A stretch of DNA of 64,000 nucleotides from assembly GCA_965240325.2 (NCBI GenBank), contig OZ251223.1, positions 3,534,001 through 3,598,000 on the forward strand, read 5' to 3'. The position numbers and the translations under genes are program-made. Origin of the DNA: Rebecca billardiae RCC1528. Its lineage: Eukaryota; Protista; Haptophyta. Under the pieces are notes generated by a model, which saw only the letters and a program-made list of their open reading frames with translations, searched no databases and was not told the DNA's origin. Within the stretch, counting starts at the first letter, position 1. Each line of letters starts with the position of its first letter. Of this stretch, positions 1 through 22,300 are shown piece after piece.

Positions 1-510
1 GCTGAGCGGCGGCCGGCAGCGTGCGCGGCAGCAGCTGACGCAGCTGCGCCAGCGCAGAGCGCTCGCCCTCCGACTGCTGCTCGGCCCACGAGAGCACGCC
101 CAGCGAGTACCGGTACTCGCCGTTCGTGTCGCGCACGGGCGTGAGCGACAGATCGTTCGTGAAGCGCGAGCCGTCCTTGCGGTAGTTCGTCACCTGCACG
201 TGCAGCTCCTTCATCTTGCGCAGCGCGCGCACCATCTTGGACACAATCTTGGGCTCGGTCGACGCGCCCTGCAAGAAGCGGCAGTTCCGGCCCTCCACCT
301 CGTACTTCGGGTAGCCCGTCACGCGAGCGAAGCCGCCGTTGCAGTACATCACCGTCACGCCCGGCACCGTCATGTCCGTGATCGCCACCGCGATCGGCAG
401 CGGCTCCACAGCAGCCTTGAGCGCGCCCAGCCACGTGCCGTCGCCCACGGACGGCACCTGCCCGGACGACAGCGCCTGCAGCAGCTGCACGCTCGAGTCG
501 GGCAGGCTGA

Positions 511-541
<31 letters not shown>

Positions 542-2409
542 CATGCCCATGCCCATCGGCTGCGACATCGGCTGCGCCATCGGCTGCGACATCGGCTGCG
601 CCATCGGCTGCGCCATCGGCTGCGCCATCGGCTGCGGCTGCGCGTACGACGGCTGAGGCGCGCCGTACCCGCCGCCCATGCCGTTCATCCCGCCGCCGCC
701 CATCCCGCCGCCGCCCATCATCGGCGGAGGCGCCATCGGCGTCGAGCCGAATGGCACCGGCGGCTCCGGCGGGGCAGCAGCGCCAGAGATCTCGGCCAGC
801 ATCTCCTCGTGGTGGTCGGCGAACCGCTCCTCGCCCTGCATGTCCGCCGCAGACGCCGGCATGACCGCGGTCGTCTGCAGCGCGCGCTCGAGCAGCTGGT
901 CCTCAGGGCCAGTCTCCGCAGCCGTCACCTCCTTGCGGTGCCGCGGGCCGACGTTCTGCCGCGTCGCCACCTCCACCTCCGCCGGAAGCAGCTGCAGCAG
1001 CAGAGACAACTTGTGCAGGCGCTGCTTCAGGTCAAGGCCGCCGTCCACCTCGAACTGCACGCCAAAGCACAGGCGGTACACGCCGTTCGAGTCGTGCACC
1101 GGTCGCATCGACAGCAGGTTCTGGAACGTCTGCCCGTTCTTGCGGTAGTTGGTGATCTTGACGAAGCAGTCCGCGCCGCGCCGCAGCGTGTCCTGGATGA
1201 TCGCCACAGACGCCGGCTCCGTGCGAGGGCCCTGCAAGAAGCGGCAGTTACGACCCTGCGCCTCGCGCTTCGAGTAGCCCGTCACGCGCCCAAACTCCTT
1301 GTTCGTGAACAACATCGGGTTGCCCGAGATCGCCATGTCCGACAGCACGATGCACGCGGGGAAGTCCTCGGCGAACGACGCGAACGAGTAGATGAAGCCC
1401 GCAAGGTCGTCCGGAACCTCGTACTTGTCCCAGATCAGCCCGCGGCTCGAGTCGATGCGGTCGATCGGCGGAACCATCGACTCGACGAGCGAGTCGCAAC
1501 CGCCAGACTTGATCCACTTCGGGAACAGCTCGCCCGTCAGCTTCGACGTCACCTCCGCCGCCTTCTTCTCGAACGAGGCGAAGTCGAGCGACCGAGCCGT
1601 GCCCGAGGACATGCCCAGGTGCTTCTCGCAGATCTGACGCATGCGCACGTCGCGCGCACGCCCGTCCATCTTCGACAGCTTCTTCGCCTCGCTGAAGAAG
1701 TCGACGAGCGAGCCCTCGTTCGTGCGCTGCAAGAACTGGCGGAACGACGCCTGCGCCTGCTCGTTCGTCATCAGCTTCTCGAGCGACTGCTCGGCGTCGA
1801 GCGTCCACTGCAGCTTGGTGAACATCACCTGCGCCTTGCGGTGCTGCTGCGCCTTCGACTGCGAGTCCACGCGCACCTCCTTCGACGCGAACGCAGCAGG
1901 CTGAGCGGCGGCCGGCATCGTGCGCGGCAGCAGCTGACGCAGCTGCGCCAGCGCAGAGCGCTCGCCCTCCGACTGCTGCTCGGCCCACGAGAGCACGCCC
2001 AGCGAGTACCGGTACTCGCCGTTCGTGTCGCGCACGGGCGTGAGCGACAGGTCGTTCGTGAAGCGCGAGCCGTCCTTGCGGTAGTTCGTCACCTGCACGT
2101 GCAGCTCCTTCATCTTGCGCAGCGCGCGCACCATCTTGGACACAATCTTGGGCTCGGTCGACGCGCCCTGCAAGAAGCGGCAGTTCCGGCCCTCCACCTC
2201 GTACTTCGGGTAGCCCGTCACGCGAGCGAAGCCGCCGTTGCAGTACATCACCGTCACGCCCGGCACCGTCATGTCCGTGATCGCCACCGCGATCGGCAGC
2301 GGCTCCACAGCAGCCTTGAGCGCGCCCAGCCACGTGCCGTCGCCCGCGGACGGCACCTGCCCGGACGACAGCGCCTGCAGCAGCTGCACGCTCGAGTCGG
2401 GCAGGCTGA

Positions 2410-2440
<31 letters not shown>

Positions 2441-4296
2441 CATGCCCATGCCCATCGGCTGCGCCATCGGCTGCGACATCGGCTGCGACATCGGCTGCGC
2501 CATCGGCTGCGACATCGGCTGCGGCTGCGCGTACGACGGCTGAGGCGCGCCGTACCCGCCGCCCATGCCGTTCATCCCGCCGCCGCCCATCCCGCCGCCG
2601 CCCATCATCGGCGCAGGCGCCATCGGCGTCGAGCCGAATGGCACCGGCGGCTCCGGCGGGGCAGCAGCGCCAGAGATCTCGGCCAGCATCTCCTCGTGGT
2701 GGTCGGCGAACCGCTCCTCGCCCTGCATGTCCGCCGCAGACGCCGGCATGACCGCGGTCGTCTGCAGCGCGCGCTCGAGCAGCTGGTCCTCAGGGCCAGT
2801 CTCCGCAGCCGTCACCTCCTTGCGGTGCCGCGGGCCGACGTTCTGCCGCGTCGCCACCTCCACCTCCGCCGGAAGCAGCTGCAGCAGCAGAGACAACTTG
2901 TGCAGGCGCTGCTTCAGGTCAAGGCCGCCGTCCACCTCGAACTGCACGCCAAAGCACAGGCGGTACACGCCGTTCGAGTCGTGCACCGGTCGCATCGACA
3001 GCAGGTTCTGGAACGTCTGCCCGTTCTTGCGGTAGTTGGTGATCTTGACGAAGCAGTCCGCGCCGCGCCGCAGCGTGTCCTGGATGATCGCCACAGACGC
3101 CGGCTCCGTGCGAGGGCCCTGCAAGAAGCGGCAGTTACGACCCTGCGCCTCGCGCTTCGAGTAGCCCGTCACGCGCCCAAACTCCTTGTTCGTGAACAAC
3201 ATCGGGTTGCCCGAGATCGCCATGTCCGACAGCACGATGCACGCGGGGAAGTCCTCGGCGAACGACGCGAACGAGTAGATGAAGCCCGCAAGGTCGTCCG
3301 GCACCTCGTACTTGTCCCAGATCAGCCCGCGGCTCGAGTCGATGCGGTCGATCGGCGGAACCATCGACTCGACGAGCGAGTCGCAACCGCCAGACTTGAT
3401 CCACTTCGGGAACAGCTCGCCCGTCAGCTTCGACGTCACCTCCGCCGCCTTCTTCTCGAACGAGGCGAAGTCGAGCGACCGAGCCGTGCCCGAGGACATG
3501 CCCAGGTGCTTCTCGCAGATCTGACGCATGCGCACGTCGCGCGCACGCCCGTCCATCGTCGACAGCTTCTTCGCCTCGCTGAAGAAGTCGACGAGCGAGC
3601 CCTCGTTCGTGCGCTGCAAGAACTGGCGGAACGACGCCTGCGCCTGCTCGTTCGTCATCAGCTTCTCGAGCGACTGCTCGGCGTCGAGCGTCCACTGCAG
3701 CTTGGTGAACATCACCTGCGCCTTGCGGTGCTGCTGCGCCTTCGACTGCGAGTCCACGCGCACCTCCTTCGACGCGAACGCAGCAGGCTGAGCGGCGGCC
3801 GGCATCGTGCGCGGCAGCAGCTGACGCAGCTGCGCCAGCGCAGAGCGCTCGCCCTCCGACTGCTGCTCGGCCCACGAGAGCACGCCCAGCGAGTACCGGT
3901 ACTCGCCGTTCGTGTCGCGCACGGGCGTGAGCGACAGGTCGTTCGTGAAGCGCGAGCCGTCCTTGCGGTAGTTCGTCACCTGCACGTGCAGCTCCTTCAT
4001 CTTGCGCAGCGCGCGCACCATCTTGGACACAATCTTGGGCTCGGTCGACGCGCCCTGCAAGAAGCGGCAGTTCCGGCCCTCCACCTCGTACTTCGGGTAG
4101 CCCGTCACGCGAGCGAAGCCGCCGTTGCAGTACATCACCGTCACGCCCGGCACCGTCATGTCCGTGATCGCCACCGCGATCGGCAGCGGCTCCACAGCAG
4201 CCTTGAGCGCGCCCAGCCACGTGCCGTCGCCCGCGGACGGCACCTGCCCGGACGACAGCGCCTGCAGCAGCTGCACGCTCGAGTCGGGCAGGCTGA

Positions 4297-4327
<31 letters not shown>

Positions 4328-6183
4328 CATGCCCATGCCCATCGGCTGCGCCATCGGCTGCGACATCGGCTGCGACATCGGCTGCGCCATCGGCTGCGAC
4401 ATCGGCTGCGGCTGCGCGTACGACGGCTGAGGCGCGCCGTACCCGCCGCCCATGCCGTTCATCCCGCCGCCGCCCATCCCGCCGCCGCCCATCATCGGCG
4501 CAGGCGCCATCGGCGTCGAGCCGAATGGCACCGGCGGCTCCGGCGGGGCAGCAGCGCCAGAGATCTCGGCCAGCATCTCCTCGTGGTGGTCGGCGAACCG
4601 CTCCTCGCCCTGCATGTCCGCCGCAGACGCCGGCATGACCGCGGTCGTCTGCAGCGCGCGCTCGAGCAGCTGGTCCTCAGGGCCAGTCTCCGCAGCCGTC
4701 ACCTCCTTGCGGTGCCGCGGGCCGACGTTCTGCCGCGTCGCCACCTCCACCTCCGCCGGAAGCAGCTGCAGCAGCAGAGACAACTTGTGCAGGCGCTGCT
4801 TCAGGTCAAGGCCGCCGTCCACCTCGAACTGCACGCCAAAGCACAGGCGGTACACGCCGTTCGAGTCGTGCACCGGTCGCATCGACAGCAGGTTCTGGAA
4901 CGTCTGCCCGTTCTTGCGGTAGTTGGTGATCTTGACGAAGCAGTCCGCGCCGCGCCGCAGCGTGTCCTGGATGATCGCCACAGACGCCGGCTCCGTGCGA
5001 GGGCCCTGCAAGAAGCGGCAGTTACGACCCTGCGCCTCGCGCTTCGAGTAGCCCGTCACGCGCCCAAACTCCTTGTTCGTGAACAACATCGGGTTGCCCG
5101 AGATCGCCATGTCCGACAGCACGATGCACGCGGGGAAGTCCTCGGCGAACGACGCGAACGAGTAGATGAAGCCCGCAAGGTCGTCCGGAACCTCGTACTT
5201 GTCCCAGATCAGCCCGCGGCTCGAGTCGATGCGGTCGATCGGCGGAACCATCGACTCGACGAGCGAGTCGCAACCGCCAGACTTGATCCACTTCGGGAAC
5301 AGCTCGCCCGTCAGCTTCGACGTCACCTCCGCCGCCTTCTTCTCGAACGAGGCGAAGTCGAGCGACCGAGCCGTGCCCGAGGACATGCCCAGGTGCTTCT
5401 CGCAGATCTGACGCATGCGCACGTCGCGCGCACGCCCGTCCATCTTCGACAGCTTCTTCGCCTCGCTGAAGAAGTCGACGAGCGAGCCCTCGTTCGTGCG
5501 CTGCAAGAACTGGCGGAACGACGCCTGCGCCTGCTCGTTCGTCATCAGCTTCTCGAGCGACTGCTCGGCGTCAAGCGTCCACTGCAGCTTGGTGAACATC
5601 ACCTGCGCCTTGCGGTGCTGCTGCGCCTTCGACTGCGAGTCCACGCGCACCTCCTTCGACGCGAACGCAGCAGGCTGAGCGGCGGCCGGCATCGTGCGCG
5701 GCAGCAGCTGACGCAGCTGCGCCAGCGCAGAGCGCTCGCCCTCCGACTGCTGCTCGGCCCACGAGAGCACGCCCAGCGAGTACCGGTACTCGCCGTTCGT
5801 GTCGCGCACGGGCGTGAGCGACAGGTCGTTCGTGAAGCGCGAGCCGTCCTTGCGGTAGTTCGTCACCTGCACGTGCAGCTCCTTCATCTTGCGCAGCGCG
5901 CGCACCATCTTGGACACAATCTTGGGCTCGGTCGACGCGCCCTGCAAGAAGCGGCAGTTCCGGCCCTCCACCTCGTACTTCGGGTAGCCCGTCACGCGAG
6001 CGAAGCCGCCGTTGCAGTACATCACCGTCACGCCCGGCACCGTCATGTCCGTGATCGCCACCGCGATCGGCAGCGGCTCCACAGCAGCCTTGAGCGCGCC
6101 CAGCCACGTGCCGTCGCCCACGGACGGCACCTGCCCGGACGACAGCGCCTGCAGCAGCTGCACGCTCGAGTCGGGCAGGCTGA

Positions 6184-6214
<31 letters not shown>

Positions 6215-9200
6215 CATGCCCATGCCCATCGGCTGCGACATCGGCTGCGACATCGGCTGCGGCTGCGCGTACGACGGCTGAGGCGCGCCGTACCCGCCGC
6301 CCATGCCGTTCATCCCGCCGCCGCCCATCCCGCCGCCGCCCATCATCGGCGCAGGCGCCATCGGCGTCGAGCCGAATGGCACCGGCGGCTCCGGCGGGGC
6401 AGCAGCGCCAGAGATCTCGGCCAGCATCTCCTCGTGGTGGTCGGCGAACCGCTCCTCGCCCTGCATGTCCGCCGCAGACGCCGGCATGACCGCGGTCGTC
6501 TGCAGCGCGCGCTCGAGCAGCTGGTCCTCAGGGCCAGTCTCCGCAGCCGTCACCTCCTTGCGGTGCCGCGGGCCGACGTTCTGCCGCGTCGCCACCTCCA
6601 CCTCCGCCGGAAGCAGCTGCAGCAGCAGAGACAACTTGTGCAGGCGCTGCTTCAGGTCAAGGCCGCCGTCCACCTCGAACTGCACGCCAAAGCACAGGCG
6701 GTACACGCCGTTCGAGTCGTGCACCGGTCGCATCGACAGCAGGTTCTGGAACGTCTGCCCGTTCTTGCGGTAGTTGGTGATCTTGACGAAGCAGTCCGCG
6801 CCGCGCCGCAGCGTGTCCTGGATGATCGCCACGGACGCCGGCTCCGTGCGAGGGCCCTGCAAGAAGCGGCAGTTACGACCCTGCGCCTCGCGCTTCGAGT
6901 AGCCCGTCACGCGCCCAAACTCCTTGTTCGTGAACAACATCGGGTTGCCCGAGATCGCCATGTCCGACAGCACGATGCACGCGGGGAAGTCCTCGGCGAA
7001 CGACGCGAACGAGTAGATGAAGCCCGCAAGGTCGTCCGGAACCTCGTACTTGTCCCAGATCAGCCCGCGGCTCGAGTCGATGCGGTCGATCGGCGGAACC
7101 ATCGACTCGACGAGCGAGTCGCAACCGCCAGACTTGATCCACTTCGGGAACAGCTCGCCCGTCAGCTTCGACGTCACCTCCGCCGCCTTCTTCTCGAACG
7201 AGGCGAAGTCGAGCGACCGAGCCGTGCCCGAGGACATGCCCAGGTGCTTCTCGCAGATCTGACGCATGCGCACGTCGCGCGCACGCCCGTCCATCTTCGA
7301 CAGCTTCTTCGCCTCGCTGAAGAAGTCGACGAGCGAGCCCTCGTTCGTGCGCTGCAAGAACTGGCGGAACGACGCCTGCGCCTGCTCGTTCGTCATCAGC
7401 TTCTCGAGCGACTGCTCGGCGTCAAGCGTCCACTGCAGCTTGGTGAACATCACCTGCGCCTTGCGGTGCTGCTGCGCCTTCGACTGCGAGTCCACGCGCA
7501 CCTCCTTCGACGCGAACGCAGCAGGCTGAGCGGCGGCCGGCATCGTGCGCGGCAGCAGCTGACGCAGCTGCGCCAGCGCAGAGCGCTCGCCCTCCGACTG
7601 CTGCTCGGCCCACGAGAGCACGCCCAGCGAGTACCGGTACTCGCCGTTCGTGTCGCGCACAGGCGTGAGCGACAGGTCGTTCGTGAAGCGCGAGCCGTCC
7701 TTGCGGTAGTTCGTCACCTGCACGTGCAGCTCCTTCATCTTGCGCAGCGCGCGCACCATCTTGGACACAATCTTGGGCTCGGTCGACGCGCCCTGCAAGA
7801 AGCGGCAGTTCCGGCCCTCCACCTCGTACTTCGGGTAGCCCGTCACGCGAGCGAAGCCGCCGTTGCAGTACATCACCGTCACGCCCGGCACCGTCATGTC
7901 CGTGATCGCCACCGCGATCGGCAGCGGCTCCACAGCAGCCTTGAGCGCGCCCAGCCACGTGCCGTCGCCCACGGACGGCACCTGCCCTGACGACAGCGCC
8001 TGCAGCAGCTGCACGCTCGAGTCGGGCAGGCTGAACTCGCCGCCGCCACCGCCGCCGCCGCCACCGCCCATGCCCATGCCCGTGTTCATGCCCATGGTGT
8101 CTGTCCAGCCCGTGGCTGGAGCGACACCCGCCCCCATGCCCACGCCTGCCGATGGCTCCGGCATCGGCGCAATCAACGATGGTGTAGACGCGGGTGCTGC
8201 GTGATGCATGTCACTGTTGTCCGGGGGCAGATCTGCGAGCTCAGCGAGCATCTCGTCGCGGTGGTCCGCGAACCGCTCCTCGCCCTGCATGTCCGCCGCA
8301 GACGCCGGCACGACCGCGGTCGTCTGCAGCGCGTGCTCGAGCAGCTGGTCCTCCGGGCCAGTCTCCGCAGCCGTCACCTCCTTGCGGTGCCGCGGGCCGA
8401 CGTTCTGCCGCGTCGCCACCTCCACCTCCGCCGGAAGCAGCTGCAGCAGCAGAGACAACTTGTGCAGGCGCTGCTTCAGGTCAAGGCCGCCGTCCACCTC
8501 GAACTGCACGCCAAAGCACAGGCGGTACACGCCGTTCGAGTCGTGCACCGGACGCATCGACAGCAGGTTCTGGAACGTCTGCCCGTTCTTGCGGTAGTTG
8601 GTGATCTTGACGAAGCAGTCCGCGCCGCGCCGCAGCGTGTCCTGGATGATCGCCACGGACGCCGGCTCCGTGCGAGGGCCCTGCAAGAAGCGGCAGTTAC
8701 GACCCTGCGCCTCGCGCTTCGAGTAGCCCGTCACGCGCCCAAACTCCTTGTTCGTGAACAACATCGGGTTGCCCGAGATCGCCATGTCCGACAGCACGAT
8801 GCACGCGGGGAAGTCCTCGGCGAACGACGCGAACGAGTAGATGAAGCCCGCAAGGTCGTCCGGCACCTCGTACTTGTCCCAGATCAGCCCGCGGCTCGAG
8901 TCGATGCGGTCGATCGGCTTCACCATGGAGTTGACTATCGCGTCACACCCGCCTGACTTGACGTACTTCGGGAACAGCTCGCCGGTCAGCTTCTTCTCGA
9001 TCTCCGACGACTTCTGCATGAAAGCCGAGTAGTCGATCATTGCTGCCGTCTGGGGATTCATGCCCAGGTGCTTCTCGCACATCATACGCACGCGCACATC
9101 ACGTGCGCGCCCGTCCATCGTCGACAGCTTCTTCGCCTCGAGGAAGAAGTCGAGCATCCACACCTCGTTCGTGCGCTGCAAGAACTGGCGGAACGACGCC

Positions 9201-11704
9201 TGCGCCTGCTCGTTCGCCATCAGCTTCTCGAGCGACTGCTCGGCGTCGAGCGTCCACTGCAGCTTCGCGAAGAGCACCTGCGCCTTGCGATGCTGCTCGA
9301 GCTTCGACTGCGAGTCCACGCGCACCTCCTTCGACGCGAACGCAGCAGGCTGAGCGGCGGCCGGCATCGTGCGCGGCAGCAGCTGACGCAGCTGCGCCAG
9401 CGCAGAGCGCTCGCCCTCCGACTGCTGCTCGGCCCACGAGAGCACGCCCAGCGAGTACCGGTACTCGCCGTTCGTGTCGCGCACGGGCGTGAGCGACAGG
9501 TCGTTCGTGAAGCGCGAGCCGTCCTTGCGGTAGTTCGTCACCTGCACGTGCAGCTCCTTCATCTTGCGCAGCGCGCGCACCATCTTGGACACAATCTTGG
9601 GCTCGGTCGACGCGCCCTGCAAGAAGCGGCAGTTCCGGCCCTCCACCTCGTACTTCGGGTAGCCCGTCACGCGAGCGAAGCCGCCGTTGCAGTACATCAC
9701 CGTCACGCCCGGCACCGTCATGTCCGTGATCGCCACCGCGATCGGCAGCGGCTCCACAGCAGCCTTGAGCGCGCCCAGCCACGTGCCGTCGCCCACGGAC
9801 GGCACCTGCCCGGACGACAGCGCCTGCAGCAGCTGCACGCTCGAGTCGGGCAGGCTGAACTCGCCGCCGCCGCCGCCGCCGCCACCACCCATGCCCATGC
9901 CCATCGGCTGCGCCAACGACTGCGCCATCGGCTGCGGCTGCGCGTACGACGGCTGAGGCGCGCCGTACCCGCCGCCCATGCCGTTCATCCCGCCGCCACC
10001 CATCCCGCCGCCGCCCATCATCGGCGCAGGCGCCATCGGCGTCGAGCCGAATGGCACCGGCGGCTCCGGCGGGGCAGCAGCGCCAGAGATCTCGGCCAGC
10101 ATCTCCTCGTGGTGGTCGGCGAACCGCTCCTCGCCCTGCATGTCCGCCGCAGACGCCGGCATGACCGCGGTCGTCTGCAGCGCGCGCTCCACGAGCTGGT
10201 CCTCCGGGCCAGTCTCCGCAGCCGTCACCTCCTTGCGGTGCCGCGGGCCGACATTCTGCTGCGTCGCCACCTCCACCTCTGACGGAAGCAGCTGCAGCAG
10301 CAGAGACAACTTGTGCAGGCGCTGCTTCAGGTCAAGGCCGCCGTCCACCTCGAACTGCACGCCAAAGCACAGGCGGTACACGCCGTTCGAGTCGTGCACC
10401 GGTCGCATCGACAGCAGGTTCTGGAACGTCTGCCCGTTCTTGCGGTAGTTGGTGATCTTGACGAAGCAGTCCGCGCCGCGCCGCAGCGTGTCCTGGATGA
10501 TCGCCACGGACGCCGGCTCCGTGCGAGGGCCCTGCAAGAAGCGGCAGTTACGACCCTGCGCCTCGCGCTTCGAGTAGCCCGTCACGCGCCCAAACTCCTT
10601 GTTCGTGAACAACATCGGGTTGCCCGGGATCGCCATGTCCGACAGCACGATGCACGCGGGGAAGTCCTCGGCGAACGACGCGAACGAGTAGATGAAGCCC
10701 GCAAGGTCGTCCGGCACCTCGTACTTGTCCCAGATCAGCCCGCGGCTCGAGTCGATGCGGTCGATCGGCGGAACCATCGACTCGACGAGCGAGTCGCAAC
10801 CGCCAGACTTGATCCACTTCGGGAACAGCTCGCCCGTCAGCTTCTTCTCGATCTCCGACGACTTCTGCATGAAGCTGGACGCATCGATGCGCGAGGAGTC
10901 CTTCTGGTTCATGCCTAGGTGCTTCTCGCAGAGTTGGCGCATGCGCACCTCGCGTGAGCGCCCGTCCATCGCCCCCAGCTTCTTCGCCTCGAGGTAGAAG
11001 TCGAGCATCGACCCGCTGTTCGTGCGCTGCAAGAACTGGCGGAACGACGCCTGCGCCTGCTCGTTCGCCATCAGCTTCTCGAGCTTGTGCTCCGCCTCCA
11101 GGGTCCACTGCAGCTTGGTGAACATCACCTGCGCCTTGCGGTGCTGCTGCCGCTTCGCCTGCTCGTCGACACGCACCTCGTCGTACGATGGCGGCTGCGC
11201 TTCTGCCGGCATCGTGCGCGGCAGCAGCTGACGCAGCTGCGCCAGCGCAGAGCGCTCGCCCTCCGACTGCTGCTCGGCGCACGAGAGCACGCCCAGCGAG
11301 TACCGGTACTCGCCGTTCGTGTCACGCACGGGCGTGAGCGACAGGTCGTTCGTGAAGCGCGAGCCGTCCCGGCGGTAGTTCGTCACCTGCACGTGCAGCT
11401 CCTTCATCTTGCGCAGCGCGCGCACCATCTTGGACACCTCGATGGGCTCGGTCTGCGGGCCCTGCAGGAAGCGGCAGTTCCGGCCCTCAACCTCGGACTT
11501 CGGGAAGCCCGTCACGCGAGCGAAGCCGCCGTTGCAGTACATCACCGTCACGCCCGGCACCGTCATGTCCGTGATCGCCACCGCGATCGGCAGCGGCTCC
11601 ACAGCAGCCTTGAGCGCGCCCAGCCACGTGCCGTCGCCCACGGACGGCACCTGCCCGGACGACAGCGCCTGCAGCAGCTGCACGCTCGAGTCGGGCAGGC
11701 TGAA
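1..11704 (-). repeat. Coding tandem repeat, unit = LOV-A / RGS-like / LOV-B / Gly-Met-Pro-Gln linker; six full units plus a partial seventh
   Basis: Unit starts (FSLPDS) at 11704, 9859, 8035, 6184, 4297, 2410 and 511. Lengths are 1845, 1824, 1851, 1887, 1887 and 1899 nt, all multiples of 3. LOV Cys codons lie near 11474, 10544, 9629, 8693, 7805, 6869, 5954, 5018, 4067, 3131, 2180, 1244 and 281. Confidence 0.95.
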
Positions 11705-14700
11705 CTTGTCGCCGCCGCCGCTGCCGCCCGTGCCCGTGCGCATGCCGACGCCCATGCTCGAGGCCATCGGTCCCTCGTCGTCGTCGTCGGAGCCGAACAT
11801 GCCGTCCAGGGTCATCCTCCCGCCACGACCGCCAGCCTGAGGCGCAGGTGCGGCGGGCTCCCCGGCGGGCTCGGAGTCGGGCTCGCTGGTGGCCTCGCTC
11901 GCGTCACGAGCTTCGGAGTCGGGCTCGCTCGGCGCATCCACCCTCGCCATGGGCACCTTCTTGACGGCGTTGCTCAACGTGACCTCGGCAGGTTGGACGA
12001 GGGCGAGCGCGGCGGCGGCGTCGCTCAAGTACGCGTGCAGCGAGCGGATCTCGTCTCCGCCGACCTCGCGCTGCAAGCGGTTCACGTCGCGCATGCGCAC
12101 CGTCCCACGGCCGCGTGGATCAAACACCTTGTTCAACTTGCAGATGGCCTCCGCCGCCGCCGCCAGCGCCTGCGGAACCTGCTGCTGCTGGCCATTCGAC
12201 GACGAGCCGCCATCCTCGATCGCCGACGCCGGGGTGGGGCCGATCTCGGGAGTCCGGCGCTGGCGCTGGCTGCCGCCGTCGCCCGCGGCGCTCGCCTCGG
12301 CGGAGTGGCGCGCGAGGATCTCGATGAAGAGCCTGGACGTGAAGAGGATCGAGCATCCGAGCTCGGAGAAGAAGACGGGCTTGGACACCGAGCCGAACTG
12401 GGGCGCCTTGTTCATCTCGGCCAGCGCGTGGCCGAGCGAGCTGCGCCGACTCGTCGACGGCATGGCGTTGCCGTTGAAGCCCGAGGCGGGGGGGTCGTCG
12501 TTCAGCAAACTCTCGCCGGACTCGACCGCTTGGCGTGCCATCTGCTTCATGCGGTAGCGCGCACGCAGGCTCGGGCTGCCCATGGACATGCGCGAGCCGC
12601 CACCGCGCGGCGCCATGCGCGGCGTGGTGCTGGTCGTTGGCGGCCTGCTGCCACCTTGGGGGCGCACGTCGGTGGAGAGCTTCTGGGCGACGGCAAAGAG
12701 CGAGGCCCCCGTGATCGAGCCGCGGCGCATCATCTCCGCCAGGGCGGGGTCCTCGCGCGAGCGCAAGATCATCGCCGCGGCCGCGTCGAGCTCCTCGTCA
12801 CCAGAATCGCCGCCGTCGCCGTCGCGCTGCGGGGCGCTCCGGCCGGCAAAGCGCGCCACCTCGCGGTACACCTCGTCGACCACGTCCGACGCCTGCGCGT
12901 CGGTGAGGCCGCAGTCGCCGGTGAGAAGCTCCTTGAGCGCCTTCTCCTCGGCGCGCACCCGCTTGGCGCGCGAGAGGTGCTCGAACGTGTCTGCCGCCAG
13001 CCGCGACTGGAATGCCTCGCGCAGCATCACGAGGCCCTCCTCGGCGCTGGGCAGGCGGAGGATGAACTGAAAGAAGTTCTTGCTCGAGTTGTCCGCGCCC
13101 TGCGTCGGCGAGCCCGCCACCTCGCCCGCCGTCTCGCTCGCCTCCGAGTCCGAGCCGTCGTCGTCGTCGAGGTCGTCGAGGTCCTGCTCCGACTCCGAGT
13201 CCGAGTGCTCGGCGTACGTGTCGAGCCACGCGTCCGTGCGGCGGAAGAGCGCGCGGTGCAGCGTGCGCGAGGTCTTGTTGAGGGCGTGCAGCTCCTCCGC
13301 CAGCTCCTTGAACGCGAGGCCGCTCATGTGGCGCAGCTCGAGCTTGAGCTTGCGGTAGCGGTGCCGGCTCTCGGAGCGCGCCTTGAGCTTGCGGTCGATG
13401 TCGTACACCTTCAGCTGGCGCGCCTGGTCGTACACGGCCTTGATCTCGGGGTCGCGCGCGTACTGCTCGGGCAGCTCGGCGCCGCACACGCGGATGAGCA
13501 TCGCCGCCATCTCGGCCGAGTGCCGCAGCGCCTCGACGAGCGGCGGCGCCCCCCAGCGGTCCTTGGCCATCACGTCCGCGCGCGCGCTGATCAGCACGCT
13601 CGCCGCCGAGATGGAGCCGGTCGACGCGACGACGTGGAAGGGCGAGCGGTGGTCGTAGTCGGCGGCGTCGATGCAGATGCCCATGTCGACGAGGAAGCGC
13701 ATGGCCTCGATGTCCACCGCCTGCGCCGCCTCGCGCAGCGCGGCCGCCATCCGCAGAGGGTCGGCCTGCGAGTTGGAGCCGGCGAGGAGGCGCGCCGCGT
13801 GCAGGTGCTGGTTGCTGATCGCGTCGTCGAGCGGCGTGCGCCCGCGGAGGTCTCGCGCGTTGACGTCGGCGAGGTGGCCGACGAGGTGCTCGACGACGCG
13901 CACGTTGCCCTCCGCGGCGGAGAGGTGCAGCGCCGTGCGCTTGTCGTAGTTGGCGGCGTTGATCTCGCAGCCGTGCTGGAGCAGCATGGTGATGAGCGGG
14001 AGGTCGCCCGAGCTCGCCGCCTGCAGCATCCACGTCGTCATCTGCTCGTTGTCGAGCACGGCGCCGTACTCGGAGAGGACCTCGACGACCGTCTCCTGCC
14101 GGAGCTCGAGCGCGTCGCGCATCGGCGTCGCGCCCCACCGGTCGCGCACGTTCACGTCCACGCCGAGCTCGCAGAGCAGCTCGAGCACCTTGCGGTTGCC
14201 CTCGGCCGCGGCGAGGTGGAGCGTGGTGCGCTGGTCGTACCCGGCCATGTTGAGGTCGAAGCCGCGGGCGGCGAGCGCGCGGACGGACTCGACGTCGCCC
14301 GACATCGCGGCGGTGGTCAGCTGCACGAAGGCCGCCTGGTTGCGCTCGGAGATCGCCTTGCGGATCATCGCGCGCAGCTCGACGTGCTCGGGGTCCTCGT
14401 CCTCCGTGCGCAGGCCGGTCGCGAGGTCGTGGCCCTGCTTGCTCAGGTTGAACTTGCGCAGGATGATCTGCACGATCGCGTCGGCCTGCTCGGGGTACGA
14501 CTCGATGATGGTCTCGTAGTCGTCCACCGGGAGCGTGAGCAGCGTGACGTAGCCGCTCGCCGTCGCGACGACCGTGTAGGGCTGCGCGCGCGCGCGCGCA
14601 GCCGGCCGCGCGAGCGGTCGGGAGCAAAGCGCGCGCGCGCCAGCGGGCGCAAGCGGTCAGCGGCTCGCCATCGGTCGGCCTTTGGGCGGGCGCGGCGCGG

Positions 14701-16371
14701 GTACGCTGCGGGGCGCTCGCGCGCGCGCGCGCGCACCTGGTGGATGCCGATGAAGAAGGCGAGCTCGCCCACCACCTGGCCCGGCCCGAGGTCGGAGCGG
14801 ACGGTCGCGATGCGCTCGTCGCCCCTCTTCACGTGCAGCGAGCCGCCGATGCACCAGATGAGCTCGGCGGCGCCCTCGCCCTGCGCGATGATGCGCTCGG
14901 AGGGCATCACGAAGCGCTCCTTGAGCACGAGCACCACCTGGTTGAGGAACTGCGCCGAGCACGAGTTGAAGATCCACGTGCCCTGCATCTCGTCCAGGTA
15001 CTGCGCGGCCGCGACCTGCGTGCGCAGCGACGGCGGGAGCTGCTCGAAGATCTGCGCCGTGCTCGAGGCCTGCTTGCCGTGCTGGAACTCGAAGTGCGAG
15101 CGGATGCTCGACGCCACCGCCGGCGGCAGCGCGCGCGAGTGCACGTACTCGTCGATGGCCTTGAGCAGCTCGCGGAAGCGCACGGTGTTCTCGTCCACGC
15201 GCACCAGATAGTGGAAGAGCGTGCCGAGCACGAACGCGTAGAAGACGATCTGCGCGATCATGAGGAGGATCGAGAAGTTCTTCTCGCTCTCGCGCGCGGT
15301 GAGGATGATCGACGCGTACCCCATCGACGTGAAGCCCGCCCACGCCATGTACGCCGACATCATGTACTGGCCGAACGCGGACGCGCTCGTCGGCTCGAAG
15401 TAGTGGTTGCCCGTGAAGTGAGGGAACTGCGCCGACCACGACGGCATCGTGTGGCTGTCCGCGTCCCAGTCGGCGAGCACCCACCAGATGCACGCCGCCC
15501 AGTGCGGCACCGAGATCAGCACAAGGCAGAACTTGAAGACCGCGACGAAGGTGACGTTCGCGTTGAGGTCGGTCGTGAGCTCCTGCACGAGCTGCGTGAG
15601 GTCGTACGCGCGCATGCACCGCACGACCTGCGCGGCCATCCACGCCGTCTGGTCGCCGGTGAAGACGAAGAGGACGCGCGCGGCGTGGAGCACGACGACC
15701 GTGAGCACGTCGCGCGCGATCCGGCGCGGGGTCAGCTTCGGGAGCGATGCGGTCGCCTCCTCCTCCTCGACCGCGGCCGCGCCCTGCGAGCCGGCGCGCT
15801 GAGCGCGCGCCGCCCCCAGAGCCATCAGCGCGCGCCGGCGGCTCACGTTGATCAGGAAAGCGATCTCGTAGATGTCGACGACGATGTCGAGGACGATGAC
15901 GCCGACGTCCATCAGCATCGCCTTGGCGAAGGCGAAGCGCAGCGGGATGAGCAACTCCTCCACGGCCAGCACGCCCGGCCGCAGGGCGCCGAACCGGCGG
16001 AGCGTGTTGCGCAGCACCTCGCTGTCGAGCTTGGAGAGCAGGCGCTTCTGCTCGCCCTGCGACTCGAGGCGGGCGGTCTCCTCATCCGTGCTGATCACCA
16101 CCTTCCAGGTCACGCGCCGCTGCTCGCCGCGCCGCCGCCCGGCCTTGTGCTTGAGGATCGGCTTGTGGGGCGTCGCCTTCTTCTTCGGGCTCGACGTGCC
16201 AAACGGCCCGACGGGCAGGAGCGCGATCGACCCCTGGTGGTCGTCCGCGCCGTGCGACAGGCGCCCGCCACCGCTCAGCCGCTTGGCGAAGGACACGGAG
16301 GCCCGCTTGATCCCGCCGCCGAGCCCGCCGCCGCGCGACGGCTTCGAGGAGTCGCCAGCGTCCTCGCCCAT
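1..16371 (-). CDS. Giant ion channel-photoreceptor fusion: 6TM Shaker/SKOR-like channel + cNMP-binding domain + ankyrin repeats + linker + (LOV-RGS-LOV)x6 + 13th LOV; 3'-partial; exons 16371-14737 and 14581-<1
   Basis: Exon 1 is ORF 14443..16413 from ATG 16371, with TM helices, pore FTSMGYAS, S6 AQIVFYAFVLGTL, C-linker and cNBD VVGELAFFIGIHQ. Removing GT..AG intron 14736-14582 gives HQ|PYTVVAT, matching SKOR-type QPYTV. Manual translation of exon 2 found no stop, and all landmark codons share one frame (first base 1 mod 3). It passes through ankyrin motifs (YDQRTTLHLAAAEG, DRWGATP, YDKRTALHLSAAEG) and 13 GRNCRFLQG motifs. Confidence 0.88.
13520..14330 (-). other. Ankyrin repeat domain of the channel (about three tandem ANK pairs plus flanking helices; approximate bounds)
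   Basis: GYDQRTTLHLAAAEGN/DRWGATPM, NYDKRTALHLSAAEGN/DLRGRTPL, DYDHRSPFHVVASTGS/DRWGAPPL. Confidence 0.9.
14582..14736 (-). other. Spliceosomal intron (155 nt, phase 0) in the channel cNBD
   Basis: Minus strand CAG|GTGCGCGC...CGCGCGCAG|CCCTAC; removal restores the cNBD and ankyrin reading frame. Confidence 0.9.
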
Positions 16372-18242
16372 GGTCAGTGTGCCCGTCCGGGGCGCCGATG
16401 CGGCCCGCACCAAATGTTCGCGCCCGACCGCAATAGCTAAAGACGGGCGGGCGCGCGGGCGCGAACTTGTGAATCAAATCTCGCCTGATGTGACCGTGAC
16501 CTAAACCGATTATTAGCCGAAGCGCTTTCGCATCATCATCATCTCGCGCCCACCCTCTCAATATCTCCACGAGCTCTCGCGAAGGTTTCGTCCGCTTTTC
16601 CCGCCTCCGCGTGGCAATAATAATAGAGTTGCGACGATGCACATGGCGTCGACGCGTCGTCTGGAGATCCCCGATTCCCCCGCCGGTTCGCACTCAGGGC
16701 CCTCAAATGCCGTGCTGACCGTTTCATCGAGGCCATTAGTCTACTCTACAAGTGACTACAACGAATGTACTAGATGAGATGCCGGTTCGCAAGGCTACCT
16801 GAGCGCAAAGGTATCTGAGCGAGTCAATGTCTCAATGACCCTGCCTGGATCGAGCGCGTCGGACTCACCCAGCACGGGCCGGCACGGGCGCAGCACAGCC
16901 GCGATGACAACTTGCTGCGCTAAGTCAGCCGTGTCGGCCCGCGGCGGCGGGTCAATACCGCGAATACGTGTGCATACCGCGGTAAGCTAGTTTGACCTGA
17001 TTAGGCCCGCGACCCGACACTCGTCGCCACCGTGCCGATATGCGCGCCGACGGACTGGCACCGGGCCCGGGGCAGGCTCCGCGCCGAGCGGCACAATGCG
17101 TGCTTTCCGCCCCGCAGTCCGAGACCGCCGAGAGTCCGCGGCGGGGACTCGCCCAGACACGCGTGGGGGCTGCCGTCTACTCACAAAGAATACAGTCCGG
17201 CCGTCCCGGGGCCTGCATCCGCCCATAGATCCAGTCGATGGGCGCAGGTCGGCCGTGAAAACTCGGTCCGGGTGAAGTCTACTAGCTGGCAGTGGCAGTC
17301 TGGCAGCAGTATCAATCAGCCTCAGGCGGCCATGCGGCCGTGCGCGGCCGCGGCCGCGGCGGACGGCGTCACCCCGCCCACCCGCGGCGGCAGTCCGTGT
17401 CGCAGTGTGAGAGTGGGAGCCGTCGCCGCCATCATCCGACTACTCTGTCTGAGCAACCTAGTGTCCGAGTAGGCGGTCTGTCTCGTCGGTTGTCTACTCC
17501 ACCGGGCCGAACGTCTACTATTGTACCGCTAAGCTAACTAATTGCGGCGTATCCGAGTCGGTCTGCTGCTTGCCAGCTTGGCCCAGTATTAGCCTGGCCC
17601 TGGGCCTCAGTGATCTTCGGCCACGGGCCGCCCGCCACCAGTGACCAGGGCTACGCGCCTAAAGGGCCGGGCCGCGTCACTGGCGGCCATTAGGGTTCTT
17701 ATTAGCTAATGACCTTAGCTACAGTTGTAAACTGCCTTTTATACTACGGTTACACTTATGCAGAACTCCGGGGACTCGGGAACTCGACCGTAACCTGTCC
17801 GCGGTCCGGTAGCTACGGCTTGAGTCCGCACTGACCGGTCCGTTAGCTACGGACTAGAGCTCTACATACGGTCTGTCCGTGCACCGTCGAGCGTCTCCGC
17901 GCGGACCGTGAGTGAGTCGTGACTCACGGCGTTACCGTTTACTCGATCGGTCTCGTTGAATAATACTCGGCCCGAGTCGGCCTGTCGTCGGCGCGTTTAT
18001 TAGTGCGGGCCGCGCGGGTCGTAAAACGACTGATGCTAAAGAGTCCTGCGGCGCGCCGCGGCGTCAGGCGTGCTGGCTGGCGCCGTGCACGGCCCTGGCG
18101 CGCCAGCGCCACGGTGAGTCCTCGTCGAGACCGCCGGTCGGAACTTATTACTGAATTATCACTTGATCCGCATGCAGCGGAACCGTGAAACTCGACTGAT
18201 GGTCACGCCGGAGGGTCACGCCGGCGAACGCCAGTTATAAAT

Positions 18243-18245
<3 letters not shown>

Positions 18246-18289
<44 letters not shown>
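18246..18289. repeat. (AT)n microsatellite
   Basis: About 22 AT copies, read directly. Confidence 0.95.
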
Positions 18290-18291
<2 letters not shown>

Positions 18292-18857
18292 CATACCACG
18301 TCGTTCATAATATATATATTGCTTTTAATTGGTTAATATATATACTACTTATGAATTATTGCGCCCGCGATCCGCTCACGGTCATGGATGGCCGATTGCG
18401 GGACTAGCCGAGCCGCGACGGGTCGACGACATTCGCACGCGTCAGGCGCAGTCTGACAGCGCAGTACGGCTATAGTGACACTGATAGCGCGGCCCCCGCC
18501 GGGCGCGCGGCCGCTGGCGAGCCAGAGTCGGTGCTGATCGGTCCAGAAGGCATAAGCGGCTGGTAAGCTAACGGCCGGATAGTATCGCGGAACCGTAGTC
18601 GCCGCCGACAGGCACCCAGGCCTATCAGCCCAAACAGCCCGCGACACAAACCTGCCACTGTCCTCGCGACAGAACGCGTGCTTGAAGAGGCCCAAGCACC
18701 GAGAAAGTTCATAGGCTTCGATCATTATGAGACAGTGCCAGCCACAGGCAGCACGGATGCGGCCTCCGACTCCGAGCCCGTGCCGCCAACCGCATTGTCT
18801 GAAGCCGAGCACCACGAGTTCACAGTCGCTGCAGGAGACCTGACACACTGGCGCCCA

Positions 18858-19292
18858 TCAGAGCCCGCGGCGTTCGAGCGCCGCAAGCCGCTTCTCGCGG
18901 TCAGACATGGCGGTGCCCTCCGCTGATGCGCCGCCGACCGTCTGCCCCTCACCGGCCGATGACCACTTGTCGCCGCCATGCTGCTGGACCATGGCGCGCA
19001 GCGCGGCTTCGTTCGCGCCGCGGATCATGCCAACTTCCTGCTTGTCCTTGTACGTCTTGAACGTCGGCATGGCCGAGATGCCACACGCAGCTGCAGTCTC
19101 TTGGTTCTCATCCACATCAACCTTGACAAAGACAACATGCGGGAACTCCTCCTGCAGCTTCTCGAAGACCGGAGCGATCATCTTGCATGGACCGCACCAC
19201 GTTGCCGTGAAGTCGACGACCACCGCGCGGCCCTCGGCTGCCGCCTTCGCGAGGGCGTCGTCGAACTCCGCTTTCGTGGCGAGCTGCCGCAT
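18858..19292 (-). CDS. TRX: Thioredoxin (WCGPC) with short C-terminal tail; an alternative in-frame ATG lies at 19406 inside the adjacent TIR
   Basis: VVVDFTATWCGPCKMIAPVF...VFVKVDVDE...ISAMPTF. Confidence 0.93.
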   Translation of the reverse strand: MRQLATKAEFDDALAKAAAEGRAVVVDFTATWCGPCKMIAPVFEKLQEEFPHVVFVKVDVDENQETAAACGISAMPTFKTYKDKQEVGMIRGANEAALRAMVQQHGGDKWSSAGEGQTVGGASAEGTAMSDREKRLAALERRGL

Positions 19293-19398
19293 ATTGCCAC
19301 CGTCGTTCGGGCGGGGCGGTGGGCGTGGCTTCGCAGGCGGCGGAGGCGGCTGATCCGCTCCCGGTGGGTAAACCCGCCGCCACGGCCGCAAAATGGCG

Positions 19399-22300
19399 GA
19401 GGCCATTCCACCGAAATCAGCCGGCGGCGGGTGGGGACCCCAGAAGCGCCTTCGGGTGGGGAGGTCCCCACCCGAGCGCGCACTCGGGTGGGGAGGGCGA
19501 GCTCCGCAGTGCGCGGCCGCCGGCGACGCGCACCGCGGTCGTCGCTCGAGTCTCCGCGGCGCGCGCGCGAGTCTGCGCGGCCCGCGCGCGCGTCCTACGG
19601 GCGCGCACGGCCAATCTGCCCTCGCGCGCCGCTGGCTGCGCGCCTCTCCGCCGCTCACGCCGCTCGCCAATGGCCCGCGACTGCGCGTCGGCACGTTTGT
19701 CCGCTGCGGCCGACCGCGAACGCGCACAGGCGGGCACAAGGAAGTCGGACGATGATTTGCTGTCGTGTTGTGCGCGGACCATGTGTATGCGCTTCGCCCA
19801 GCCGCGCGCGTCGGTCGCGCACGCCGACCAAGGCGAGCTCGAGCGCGCGCGCAAGCTGGCGCTCGCGCGTTTTGGACCCATGAAGGTGCCAGCGACTCGA
19901 GCGCGCCCAAGCGTCGGTAGAGCGCGCGCCGCGCTCGCGCGAGGAGCTGTGTGGTCGCAGATCGCCCGCACGCTTGCGCCCTGGGCGATCCGCGCCCTCG
20001 CATGCGCCAGCCGCGCGAGGCAGCGGCGCGTCGCACATGCCGGCACCTGTAGCCTACTCGATGCCATTAGACAACGGTGCTAGTCAGTCTGAGTCATAGG
20101 CTGAGACAAGGGGACAGCATGCTCGCGGGACCAAGAGCGTGTCAGACGCGGGCATTGTCACTTGAATATTGGCGCAGGTACGCTAGTTTCGGCAGTACAT
20201 TGTACGCACGCGTCGCGGCCACACCTCGTTGCATCTTGGCCGCCTGCGCTGTGGTCGACAGCGCCGTTCACAGCGAGCACATTGTCACACAGCGCCGCCT
20301 CAGACGCACGCCACTCCCGAATTGGCCACGTGCTGTGCCACTCACTCTGGCTGGTAAGCGCGCAAGAAGGCTGTGCGCGCAGAGTGTGTCCAGCTGCGCC
20401 GTGTTCCCGAGCACGGACCGCAGCAGCTGGGAGTTGGCGCAGGAGTCCGGACTGCGTGGCGCTGGCGCGGCGAATGCGCATCGGTGCGGCGATGGCGGTG
20501 CGTCAGGCACCGCCGATGGCTCCGCGGCGGCAAGTTCGTCCGGCATAGCCATCAGCTCTGTCTGAGACACTTCAGGCGCAATGACCGCACGCGCTCGTCA
20601 AGGCAACCGCATTGGCATCCAAGTCGTCCACGGCGGCAGCCTGGCACTGACTGGGACGACAAAGGCGCGGCGTCAGAGGCACTGAGTCGACACGACCGTG
20701 GCCGCCCGTGCCACCTCTTCGCCGCCGACACGCCGTCAACCGAAGATGAAGGGGCTGCTCGCAGCCGCCGAGGCCGCCGTTAGCCGGTCTACCATCCTCT
20801 GCGTGCAGACTGCCACGAGGATGCGTGGGCTGCGGCCTGCGAGCACCGGCCGTCAGGCGGCCAGCCACCGCGGCGGCCGCAGGCCGATGCTGCTGATAAA
20901 AGCGCGGCGGCGCTGCGCGGCCCAGCGCAGCCCGTGTGACCTGAGCCTTGCGCGCCACGGCAGGCCGCGGCGGCGACAGGCCAAGTGGGCCGCGCGCGCG
21001 CGTCGCCGCGAGCCACCACGGCCATCGGACTCGGTCTCATCCAGAGTCTCGCCGCAGTCAGCGGGCGGGCGCCGACGGGCCCGCCGACCGATCCCAGGGC
21101 AGGCGGCCGCGCGGCCGAGGCCGGTCCGCTGCGATGGCATGCGCCGTGCAGCCCGCACCGAGTGCGGTTCAATCACGACCACGACAGAAAGCTGCTCAGA
21201 GGCGTCGTACGTCAAGCCCCGTGCTCCATGCTGAGCCATCGTCACGGCGCCTGCCATACATCAACGGCTGAGGGCCCTTGCCACTGAGTCGTCATCGCAG
21301 CATGAGTCGATCAATCAACACGCATCGTTGCCGCCTAGCGCCCAAGTTGCTCCTCGCCCACGCTCGCGTCTGCATCGATGCTGTGCAGAGCAGCACTCCT
21401 TCGGCTATCGCTGGCGTTAATTGCGAACTGCGCACGCAGCGAATCCATTCGAGGTGAGTACGCGTCGCGCTGAACGCCCGAGTCAGTACCGGCCTGTACG
21501 CGTCCTCGGCATGACAGCCGGAGACGATGGTGGTGTCGTGTGGCGACTGGATGCGCAACCCTCACCTGGCGACAGCAACGCAGCGCGGACTTGGGGAGTC
21601 TGTCGTGACGATTCTGCTGATGTGCTATCCAAAGACGAAGCACGTGCGAGGATCAGAAGAGGCTTAGGTGCGCCACCGCGCTGGTACACAACCTACCCGT
21701 TCAAGTGTACGCCCTGCGCGCCGTCCGCATCCTCGCGCAGGCTAGCACACAGCTGAGGCTCAGAGGCACACCAGCTGCGGCCGCTGCACGCAGGCTTGGC
21801 GCGCGCCGCGCTCGCGCGGCCGGCATGTGCGACGCGCCGCTGTCTCGCGCGGCTGGCGCATGCGAGGGCGCGGATCGCCCAGGGCGCAAGCGTGCGGGCG
21901 ATCTGCGACCACACAGCTCCTCGCGCGAGCGCGGCGCGCGCTCTACCGACGCTTGGGCGCGCTCGAGTCGCTGGCACCTTCATGGGTCCAAAACGCGCGA
22001 GCGCCAGCTTGCGCGCGCGCTCGAGCTCGCCTTGGTCGGCGTGCGCGACCGACGCGCGCGGCTGGGCGAAGCGCATACACATGGTCCGCGCACAACACGA
22101 CAGCAAATCATCGTCCGACTTCCTTGTGCCCGCCTGTGCGCGTTCGCGGTCGGCCGCAGCGGACAAACGTGCCGACGCGCAGTCGCGGGCCATTGGCGAG
22201 CGGCGTGAGCGGCGGAGAGGCGCGCAGCCAGCGGCGCGCGAGGGCAGATTGGCCGTGCGCGCCCGTAGGACGCGCGCGCGGGCCGCGCAGACTCGCGCGC

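Follow-up and report, generated by a model that had tools for sequence, protein, structure and literature searches.

The window analysed here is a stretch of 64,000 nucleotides from contig OZ251223.1 of the haptophyte Rebecca billardiae RCC1528. At its start lies a single, very large real gene, which holds a channel repeat and an array of LOV (light-oxygen-voltage) domains in one continuous coding frame. This giant gene is encoded on the minus strand and consists, as far as it falls into the window, of exon 1, an intron of 155 nt, and exon 2 (Table 1). The two exons comprise 545 + 4,860 = 5,405 codons, corresponding to 588 kDa within the window. Because of the domains that it combines, which are described in the following, the gene is on the basis of its sequence a strong candidate for a natural light-regulated channel.

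A giant gene with a channel repeat and a LOV array

The minus-strand frame of exon 2 is free of stop codons from 14656 to 2 (4,885 codons) and leaves the window at its start, and the frame upstream of it is open from 16473 to 14446 with the first ATG at 16371. The donor GT at 14736-14735 is preceded by CAC CAG, the last codons of the peptide GELAFFIGIHQ, and reads GTGCGC, while the acceptor AG at 14583-14582 is followed by CCC TAC ACG. Splicing restores the beta-roll of the cyclic nucleotide-binding domain (cNBD), in which GELAFFIGIHQ is directly followed by PYTVVATASGY. When aligned by phmmer, the last residue of exon 1 and the first residue of exon 2 correspond to residues 497/498 of the homologue P0016, 532/533 of P0017, 525/527 of P0018, and 520/522 of P0180. 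On the alignment of these four homologues the 155-nt intron is confirmed independently of any splice model. The first-pass annotation, which had been made from the letters of the window alone, had claimed one minus-strand frame of more than 5,400 codons after one canonical intron, and with 5,405 codons, GT..AG ends, and gap-free homologue alignments this claim holds.

The G+C content of the region is 65-72%. In DNA this rich in GC long open frames arise easily, and therefore the GC content was measured for each codon position in steps of 300 nt, with the GC content of the third codon position (GC3) as coding signal. All steps of the exon-2 frame between 14581 and 182 have a GC3 of 0.88-1.00, and this holds as well for the whole linker at 13261-11705 that joins the ankyrin block to the LOV array (0.88-0.95). 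Exon 1 has a GC3 of 0.93-1.00 in its own frame. Upstream of about 16381 the codon periodicity is absent (GC3 0.5-0.7), in support of a start at 16371. The coding sequence thus passes from the ankyrin repeats into the LOV array without a stop codon, a change of the frame, or an intergenic-like stretch. A chance open reading frame (ORF) in GC-rich DNA was rejected based on the GC3 periodicity together with the domain matches. None of the plus-strand ORFs within 1-16400 passes the GC3 filter, and they are therefore antisense shadows, as the first-pass annotation had supposed for the listed ORF. This includes the plus-strand ORF at 200-7990 (2,596 codons), which was rejected as a gene because it does not have a coding signature.

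The proximal part of the giant gene shows the layout of a six-transmembrane (6TM) core with P-loop, a C-linker, a cyclic nucleotide-binding homology domain (CNBHD), and ankyrin repeats. The AlphaFold model of the channel, for which 57 homologues were available, has a predicted local distance difference test score (pLDDT) of 82.5 and a predicted template modelling score (pTM) of 0.68. Its residues 1-95 are disordered, its helices fit S1-S6, the pore helix, the C-linker, and the beta-roll, and the pLDDT is above 90 across most of the pore, C-linker, and CNBHD. Foldseek places AKT1, SKOR, GORK, and KAT1 at the top (about 430-450 columns, probability 1.0). The same plant channels were found in the phmmer search of the PDB, with alignments extending from S4 to the CNBHD (SKOR 1.4e-24, GORK 4e-23, AKT1 2e-18, KAT1 4.5e-18), followed in the ranking by KCNH, SthK, CNG, and HCN channels. 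Pfam Ion_trans stays below the threshold on the pore module (16 bits, E 0.007, cut-off 25).

AKT1, SKOR, and GORK thus are the best matches by sequence as well as by fold, and they share the order of 6TM core, C-linker, CNBHD without ligand Arg, and ankyrin repeats with the giant gene. Plant Shaker-type CNBHDs likewise do not have the ligand Arg in the phosphate-binding cassette, which reads QPYTVV here. The AKT/SKOR/GORK-like layout described in the first-pass annotation is therefore supported by the nearest solved relatives. However, the plant channels have a TxGYGD filter in contrast to TSMGYAS here, they are built from single-module subunits whereas the relatives of the giant gene contain two repeats, and they do not carry a LOV array. 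In addition, the S4 of the channel repeat in the giant gene (AAQVVRCMRAYDL) contains just two Arg, the relatives having two or three, and Ion_trans is below the threshold here. The K+ filter T-x-G-Y-G-D is not present in this repeat, and because the filter is TSMGYAS the K+ selectivity is doubtful. From the earlier designation as Shaker/SKOR-type channel the layout and the nearest solved structures can accordingly be kept, but with this filter and two Arg in S4 a K+ channel is not established.

Table 1. Features of the giant gene within the window
Feature	Position	Strand	Evidence
Exon 1 (545 codons): disordered N-terminus, channel repeat A, C-linker, first part of CNBHD	14737..16371	-	first ATG, GC3, homologues aligning from their residues 43-57, model
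Transmembrane core of repeat A, S1-S6 and pore helix (model residues 97-390)	15202..16083	-	AlphaFold, Foldseek, PDB phmmer
Non-canonical selectivity filter TSMGYAS (opposite SKOR ATVGYGD)	15310..15330	-	alignment
C-linker and CNBHD, spanning the intron; cassette GELAFFIGIHQ/PYTVVA without canonical Arg	14447..15192	-	Pfam cNMP_binding, SKOR alignment
Intron, 155 nt, GT..AG, phase 0, inside CNBHD	14582..14736	-	sequence; gap-free homologue alignment
Exon 2 (4,860 codons), open at window edge	2..14581	-	no stop; GC3 0.88-1.00
Ankyrin repeat block	13382..14383	-	Pfam Ank_2 4e-31, Ank_4, Ank; aligns with both ankyrin blocks of two-repeat relatives
Linker, 520 aa (exon-2 residues 441-959)	11705..13261	-	phmmer, SEG-filtered BLASTP vs P0016/17/18/180/30/43
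LOV-RGS-like-LOV array; units start at 11704, 9859, 8035, 6184, 4297, 2410, 511 (last cut by edge)	2..11704	-	
LOV-A, unit 1: GRNCRFLQG, Leu for signalling Gln, A'alpha and Jalpha-like helices	11213..11626	-	model, fold search, sequence
RGS-like helical domain, unit 1	10736..11164	-	Pfam RGS, fold search
LOV-B, unit 1: GRNCRFLQG, GVQ kept	10289..10702	-	PDB phmmer 1e-22 to phototropin-2, aureochrome LOV

Organisation of the LOV-RGS-like-LOV array

Within the window the array consists of six LOV-RGS-like-LOV units and a 13th LOV domain. Each unit is built from LOV-A, an RGS-like helical domain, LOV-B, and a spacer. The units comprise 608-633 aa, corresponding to a DNA period of 1824-1899 nt, and the spacers between them are rich in Gly, Met, Pro, and Gln. 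In the spacers at 512-720, 2411-2610, 4298-4495, and 6185-6345, microsatellite-like repeats of 12 nt (CATCGGCTGCGA) encode QPM[AS]. Their copy number varies by unit, and this accounts for the differences in unit length. Pfam identifies 13 PAS_9 stretches (E 1.8e-209) and six RGS stretches (together 143.9 bits, E 3.5e-42) next to the ankyrin and cNMP_binding matches, in agreement with the at least 13 LOV and six RGS domains that had been counted in the channel frame before. NCRFLQG appears exactly 13 times in the exon-2 frame, each time as GRNCRFLQG, so that the flavin-adduct motif already pointed out in the annotation is kept in 13 of 13 LOV domains.

The distal units (3-7) are 99-100% identical in their DNA and about 99.5% in the protein. 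For the two proximal units, units 1 and 2, the DNA identity is 81-97%, and their proteins are 86-91% identical to the others. Diverged unit pairs have dN/dS values of 0.5-0.75. Judged from the sequences, the array is of natural origin, was homogenised recently, and is under some constraint. How many units it contains depends on the assembly, and the number may be inexact.

The LOV domains of the units match solved LOV domains in the PDB with E-values of 1e-22 to 1e-30. The model of unit 1, which was built with 25 homologous units, has a pLDDT of 86.4. Residues 1-138 of this model superpose with AsLOV2, phototropin, aureochrome, and YtvA (VIA Z 17-19), including the C-terminal Jalpha-like helix, and also with the flavin-free PAS domains of ELK, hERG, and KCNH5 (Z 16.8-18.2). 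Both flavin-contact Asn (in TNY and F[TQ]N) are present in LOV-A and LOV-B, and the best PDB matches of LOV-A include the Q103L mutant of miniSOG. The RGS-like domain (model residues 167-282) reaches Z 11.3 to the RGS domain of SNX25 and Z 10.8 to RGS3, and the only match of the sequence search against the PDB was RGS5 with E 0.019. The alignment to RGS5 is reliable in one stretch only, in which SGSM takes the place of the G-alpha contact motif SEEN and which does not cover the loop with the catalytic Asn. Within the family, too, this motif position varies. Of the six RGS domains annotated before, the RGS fold (SNX25, RGS3) can therefore be retained but the SEEN motif is absent. The domain has the fold of an RGS domain, while activity as GTPase-activating protein (GAP) is doubtful.

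Helmchrome, which is said to go back to work by Fu et al. in 2014/2016, combines LOV domains with the photoactive motif and an RGS-type domain as found in the giant gene. It is a flagellar LOV/RGS protein of stramenopiles (PMC8017926), and helmchrome-like transcripts with a single RGS and of unknown role have been found in Pavlovophyceae and Prymnesiophyceae (Coesel et al. 2021, PMC8017926). In the giant gene the unit is repeated at least 6.5 times and is in frame with a channel, whereas the transcripts of Coesel et al. have one RGS and no channel. Fungal RGS-LOV proteins such as BcLOV4, which show light-switched lipid binding (PMC6099885), also contain RGS and LOV in one chain, but in the order RGS-LOV-DUF, in a single copy, and in a soluble protein. 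The nearest cluster in the ESM Atlas is a haptophyte cluster of PAS_9 and RGS, and an RGS-LOV cluster of the Ascomycota is among the nearest clusters (score 0.94).

In general, the LOV/RGS family is common in haptophytes and pelagophyte-type stramenopiles, and large LOV/RGS arrays are widespread, with 4,013 aa in KFE25_007098 of Diacronema lutheri, 4,879 aa in Aureococcus, 3,913 aa in Chrysophaeum, and several from metagenomes. The units of KFE25_007098 are 61-64% identical to those of the window. This protein, annotated as hypothetical protein, is encoded at positions 10001-22617 of the analysed locus from JAGTXO010000005.1 (L001) and represents a free-standing LOV-A/RGS-like/LOV-B array with 12 LOV domains; its neighbours are an HMA-domain gene and an inositol-pentakisphosphate 2-kinase gene. 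Synteny between D. lutheri and the window was not found, and the units are only about 73% identical in DNA, so that the window belongs to a different lineage or represents a diverged paralogue. A different arrangement is seen in P0164 (7,579 aa, from an ENA contig of 26.5 kb), P0174, and P0175, which are giant LOV arrays with a cNBD right after a LOV domain and no detectable channel. By their domain order they are a different LOV-array architecture from other organisms. A further observation concerns a metagenome contig of 1.2 kb (L008:53-1054), which encodes a LOV domain with 47% identity to the unit and then only ankyrin repeats.

Tandem-channel relatives and the position of the array

Exon 1 was used as query in an exhaustive HMMER search for relatives of the channel. 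The best relatives are proteins of about 2,650-2,730 aa, each with two matched stretches. According to Pfam, P0016, P0017, P0018, and KAG8462633.1 of D. lutheri (3,211 aa) are all composed of a repeat A with cNBD and ankyrin repeats, a linker of about 700-1,200 aa, and a repeat B with Ion_trans, cNBD, and ankyrin repeats. P0016 is one MMETSP transcript of 2,647 aa. Exon 1 matches repeat A of the relatives with E-values of 1e-86 to 1e-128 and their repeat B with 1e-8 to 1e-18 (P0016/17/18/180). The filters of repeat A keep GYG in the relatives (TALGYGK, TSMGYGT, ATVGYGN, ASMGYGS), and those of repeat B read TTLGMES, TALGIAQ, SGLGINH, and TTLGARS. Based on these matches the giant gene encodes the first repeat (A) of a channel of the two-repeat CNBD/ankyrin tandem type. 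The gene of KAG8462633.1 spans 10.3 kb for its 3,211 aa, and therefore an array is not hidden in one of its introns.

The linker of the giant gene contains two elements, at 12824-13132 (exon-2 residues 484-586) and 12041-12403 (727-847), which match the inter-repeat linker of the tandem channels. They are followed by an acidic and Pro-rich stretch. The first LOV unit starts at exon-2 residue 960, about 110 codons past the last shared linker element. Thus, the array was probably inserted into the linker between the two repeats of a tandem channel. Because the linker is homologous to the inter-repeat linker of the relatives, the array is most likely internal and the assembly a dimer. The first-pass annotation had proposed a tetramer displaying 52 or more flavin sites, but the closest relatives are two-repeat chains and a dimer is likelier.

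Tandem CNBD channels with two repeats have been described in dinoflagellates and oomycetes (Pozdnyakov et al. 2020, PMC7576140). They consist of diverged 6TM-CNBD repeats with unlike filters, as do P0016-P0018 and KAG8462633.1, but in that paper they are reported neither for haptophytes nor with ankyrin blocks (PMC7576140), and none of them has a photoreceptor array in the inter-repeat linker. Long multi-module CNBD/ankyrin channels are present in green algae, too, where P0005 and P0007 are proteins of 2,700-3,150 aa with Ion_trans, cNMP_binding, ankyrin, and EF-hand.

Possible function as a light-regulated channel

The best explanation of this architecture, and one that we regard as evenly balanced between right and wrong, is that the LOV array modulates the gating of the tandem channel through the tether between the two repeats. 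The frame would probably continue for about three to four more units and then encode the pore, the cNBD, and the ankyrin tail of repeat B, resulting in a chain of about 9,000 aa with about ten units. Two such chains would assemble into a pseudo-tetrameric pore, the filter of which would be mixed and probably not strictly K+-selective. The array would be cytosolic, and each LOV domain would bind flavin mononucleotide and form the Cys adduct under blue light. Changes of the A'alpha and Jalpha helices might affect the tether in its conformation or in its contacts, and this tether would connect the CNBHD and ankyrin repeats of repeat A with the N-terminus of repeat B. Alternatively, LOV domains might dock on the CNBHD as in KCNH channels. 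The altered tether would modulate gating, for which the PAS (eag) domains of KCNH and the engineered BLINK are precedents, and with its many flavins a channel would catch more photons. The RGS-like domain is more likely a structural or docking module than a G-alpha GAP. Light gating of the ion flux as well as a role in the flagellum are purely what we infer.

In a further-reaching form of this explanation the gene would encode a natural flavin-based light-gated channel, in which two chains of about 9,000 aa form a pseudo-tetrameric CNBD pore driven by about 20 LOV domains per chain, and which would be both the long-sought blue-light receptor and the effector for the photobehaviour of the stigma-bearing pavlovophytes. 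We regard this form as tentative and, on the whole, doubtful. The photopigment of haptophytes is listed as unknown ('?'), and stigmata are found in Diacronema and Pavlova (Jekely 2009, PMC2781859).

Several observations weigh against a modulation of the channel by the array. LOV-A ends with YSLGVLS and has, like nearly all relatives, a Leu at the position of the signalling Gln. LOV-B presumably has a Gln at the position equivalent to R467 of AsLOV2, and we also assume a conserved Arg one helical turn past this position, both assignments coming from a manual alignment to AsLOV2. The second repeat and the stop codon of the giant gene would fall beyond the window. In addition, the array is preceded by in-frame Met codons at 11950, 11815, 11800, 11767, 11755, and 11743. 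The fusion was also not found elsewhere: there was no LOV unit in the 150 best channel representatives, no channel in 14 large LOV/RGS arrays, and no channel at any of the six full-unit loci (L002-L005, L007, L009) that were obtained when metagenomes were scanned with an alignment of the units. D. lutheri has the array and the tandem channel in two separate genes with unrelated neighbours. RNA runs were not found, and three runs of one sample lacked an informative joint. The Logan contigs of these three runs are scattered pieces of 150-230 nt and low depth over the stretch, some of them derived from paralogues. The only contig joint, 15695/16116, was rejected as a splice because of its non-canonical CG..GC ends and a side of only 24 nt.

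It is conceivable, although unlikely, that the channel repeats mainly anchor and position a helmchrome-type photoreceptor array at a membrane patch, e.g. near the stigma or the flagellar pit, and that the output is not conductance. The output would then come from partners of the RGS-like domain or from LOV-driven binding to membranes or proteins as in BcLOV4. Channel-free arrays of like units exist in KFE25_007098, Aureococcus, and Chrysophaeum, and therefore an array can signal on its own. The flagellar nature of helmchrome (PMC8017926) and the light-switched lipid binding, by which the fungal RGS-LOV proteins act (PMC6099885), are consistent with such an anchored photoreceptor, and so are the degenerate filter (GYA) and the weakly charged S4 of repeat A. 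However, repeat A is well conserved and modelled with a pLDDT above 90 over most of the module, as would be expected for a working channel. Two complete channel repeats would not be needed for an anchor, and without SEEN in the RGS-like domain a G-protein output is doubtful.

The Met codons just before unit 1 (11950-11743) would also suit two or more products from one frame, namely a channel terminated within the linker by alternative polyadenylation or splicing and an array from an internal promoter and ATG such as Met923 at 11815. The separate channel and array genes in D. lutheri point in the same direction. However, the channel part does not have a closing stop codon. The GC3 stays at 0.88-0.95 across the whole linker without any intergenic-like stretch, the conserved linker elements reach residue 847, only 76 codons before Met923, and in the relatives the linker and both repeats are on a single transcript (P0016). 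We thus regard separate products as improbable. A misassembly, which either joined a tandem channel gene to a LOV/RGS array gene or resulted in a wrong copy number of the units, is very improbable. It is true that units 3-7, being 99-100% identical in DNA, are the type of repeat that assemblers handle badly, and that the only DNA-like run holding the stretch covers it thinly. But the reading frame and the codon bias are preserved at the join, and the unit lengths vary (1824-1899 nt) with the proximal two diverged (81-97%), as in a natural array. Furthermore, a fusion of LOV and K+ channel from a Pavlova genome is listed in an independent preprint (10.1101/2025.06.20.660589).

In this preprint a 'LOV-voltage-gated potassium channel' of Pavlova sp. 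RCC6257 is included among 13 new LOV fusions identified in silico (bioRxiv 10.1101/2025.06.20.660589), and it is said to carry an Arg-to-Gln change in the flavin pocket. The species belongs to the same algal order, and the change is comparable to LOV-B by our manual alignment, so that it may or may not be the same gene. The text of the preprint contains no array, tandem context, or experiment, and the architecture is not given in it. The earlier statement that no natural channel with LOV domains was known is therefore no longer strictly true, and because of the listing a natural LOV-channel fusion in Pavlovales is, as a mere idea, not new. What is new compared with the preprint is the array together with the tandem context and any mechanism.

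A modulation of the channel by the array would resemble two other systems. In KCNH channels the eag (PAS) domain docks on the CNBHD and tunes gating. KCNH channels (EAG/ERG/ELK) thus have a LOV-like PAS fold on a CNBHD-type channel as found here, and LOV-A superposes on these domains with Z 16.8-18.2. However, KCNH channels have one N-terminal PAS domain without flavin and photoactive Cys, whereas here many photoreceptor-type LOV domains follow the ankyrin block. In Kv (KCNH) channels the PAS domains fall into one group with LOV domains, yet they do not have the light-sensitive motif (PMC8017926). The second system resembles the giant gene in that a LOV domain is joined to a pore of the K+-channel type, but it is synthetic. 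This is BLINK1, an engineered K+ channel of LOV2 and Kcv with a single LOV domain.

To our knowledge, rhodopsins are the only natural light-gated channels that have been found so far, and LOV-controlled channels are known to us just as engineered BLINK-type tools. If functional, the giant gene would encode a new class of sensory channel and a non-rhodopsin counterpart of channelrhodopsin. It could also serve directly as a template for optogenetics, would represent a photoactive version of the PAS-CNBHD coupling in hERG/EAG, and would be a concrete candidate for the unknown haptophyte photopigment. Even without light gating, a helmchrome-type array inside the inter-repeat linker of a tandem channel is undescribed in the searchable literature, and so are two-repeat CNBD/ankyrin channels in haptophytes.

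Three other coding frames were noted in the window. The plus-strand frame at 24285-26774 (830 codons, GC3 0.88) encodes a protein-only RNase P (PRORP, E 7.8e-31) with PPR repeats. On the minus strand, a frame of 604 codons at 48381-50192 with a strong coding signature (GC3 0.89) does not match any Pfam family at E <= 0.001, and the frame at 35459-38860 (1,134 codons, GC3 0.93) encodes a sulfatase with an N-terminal extension of about 480 aa to which no Pfam family was matched.

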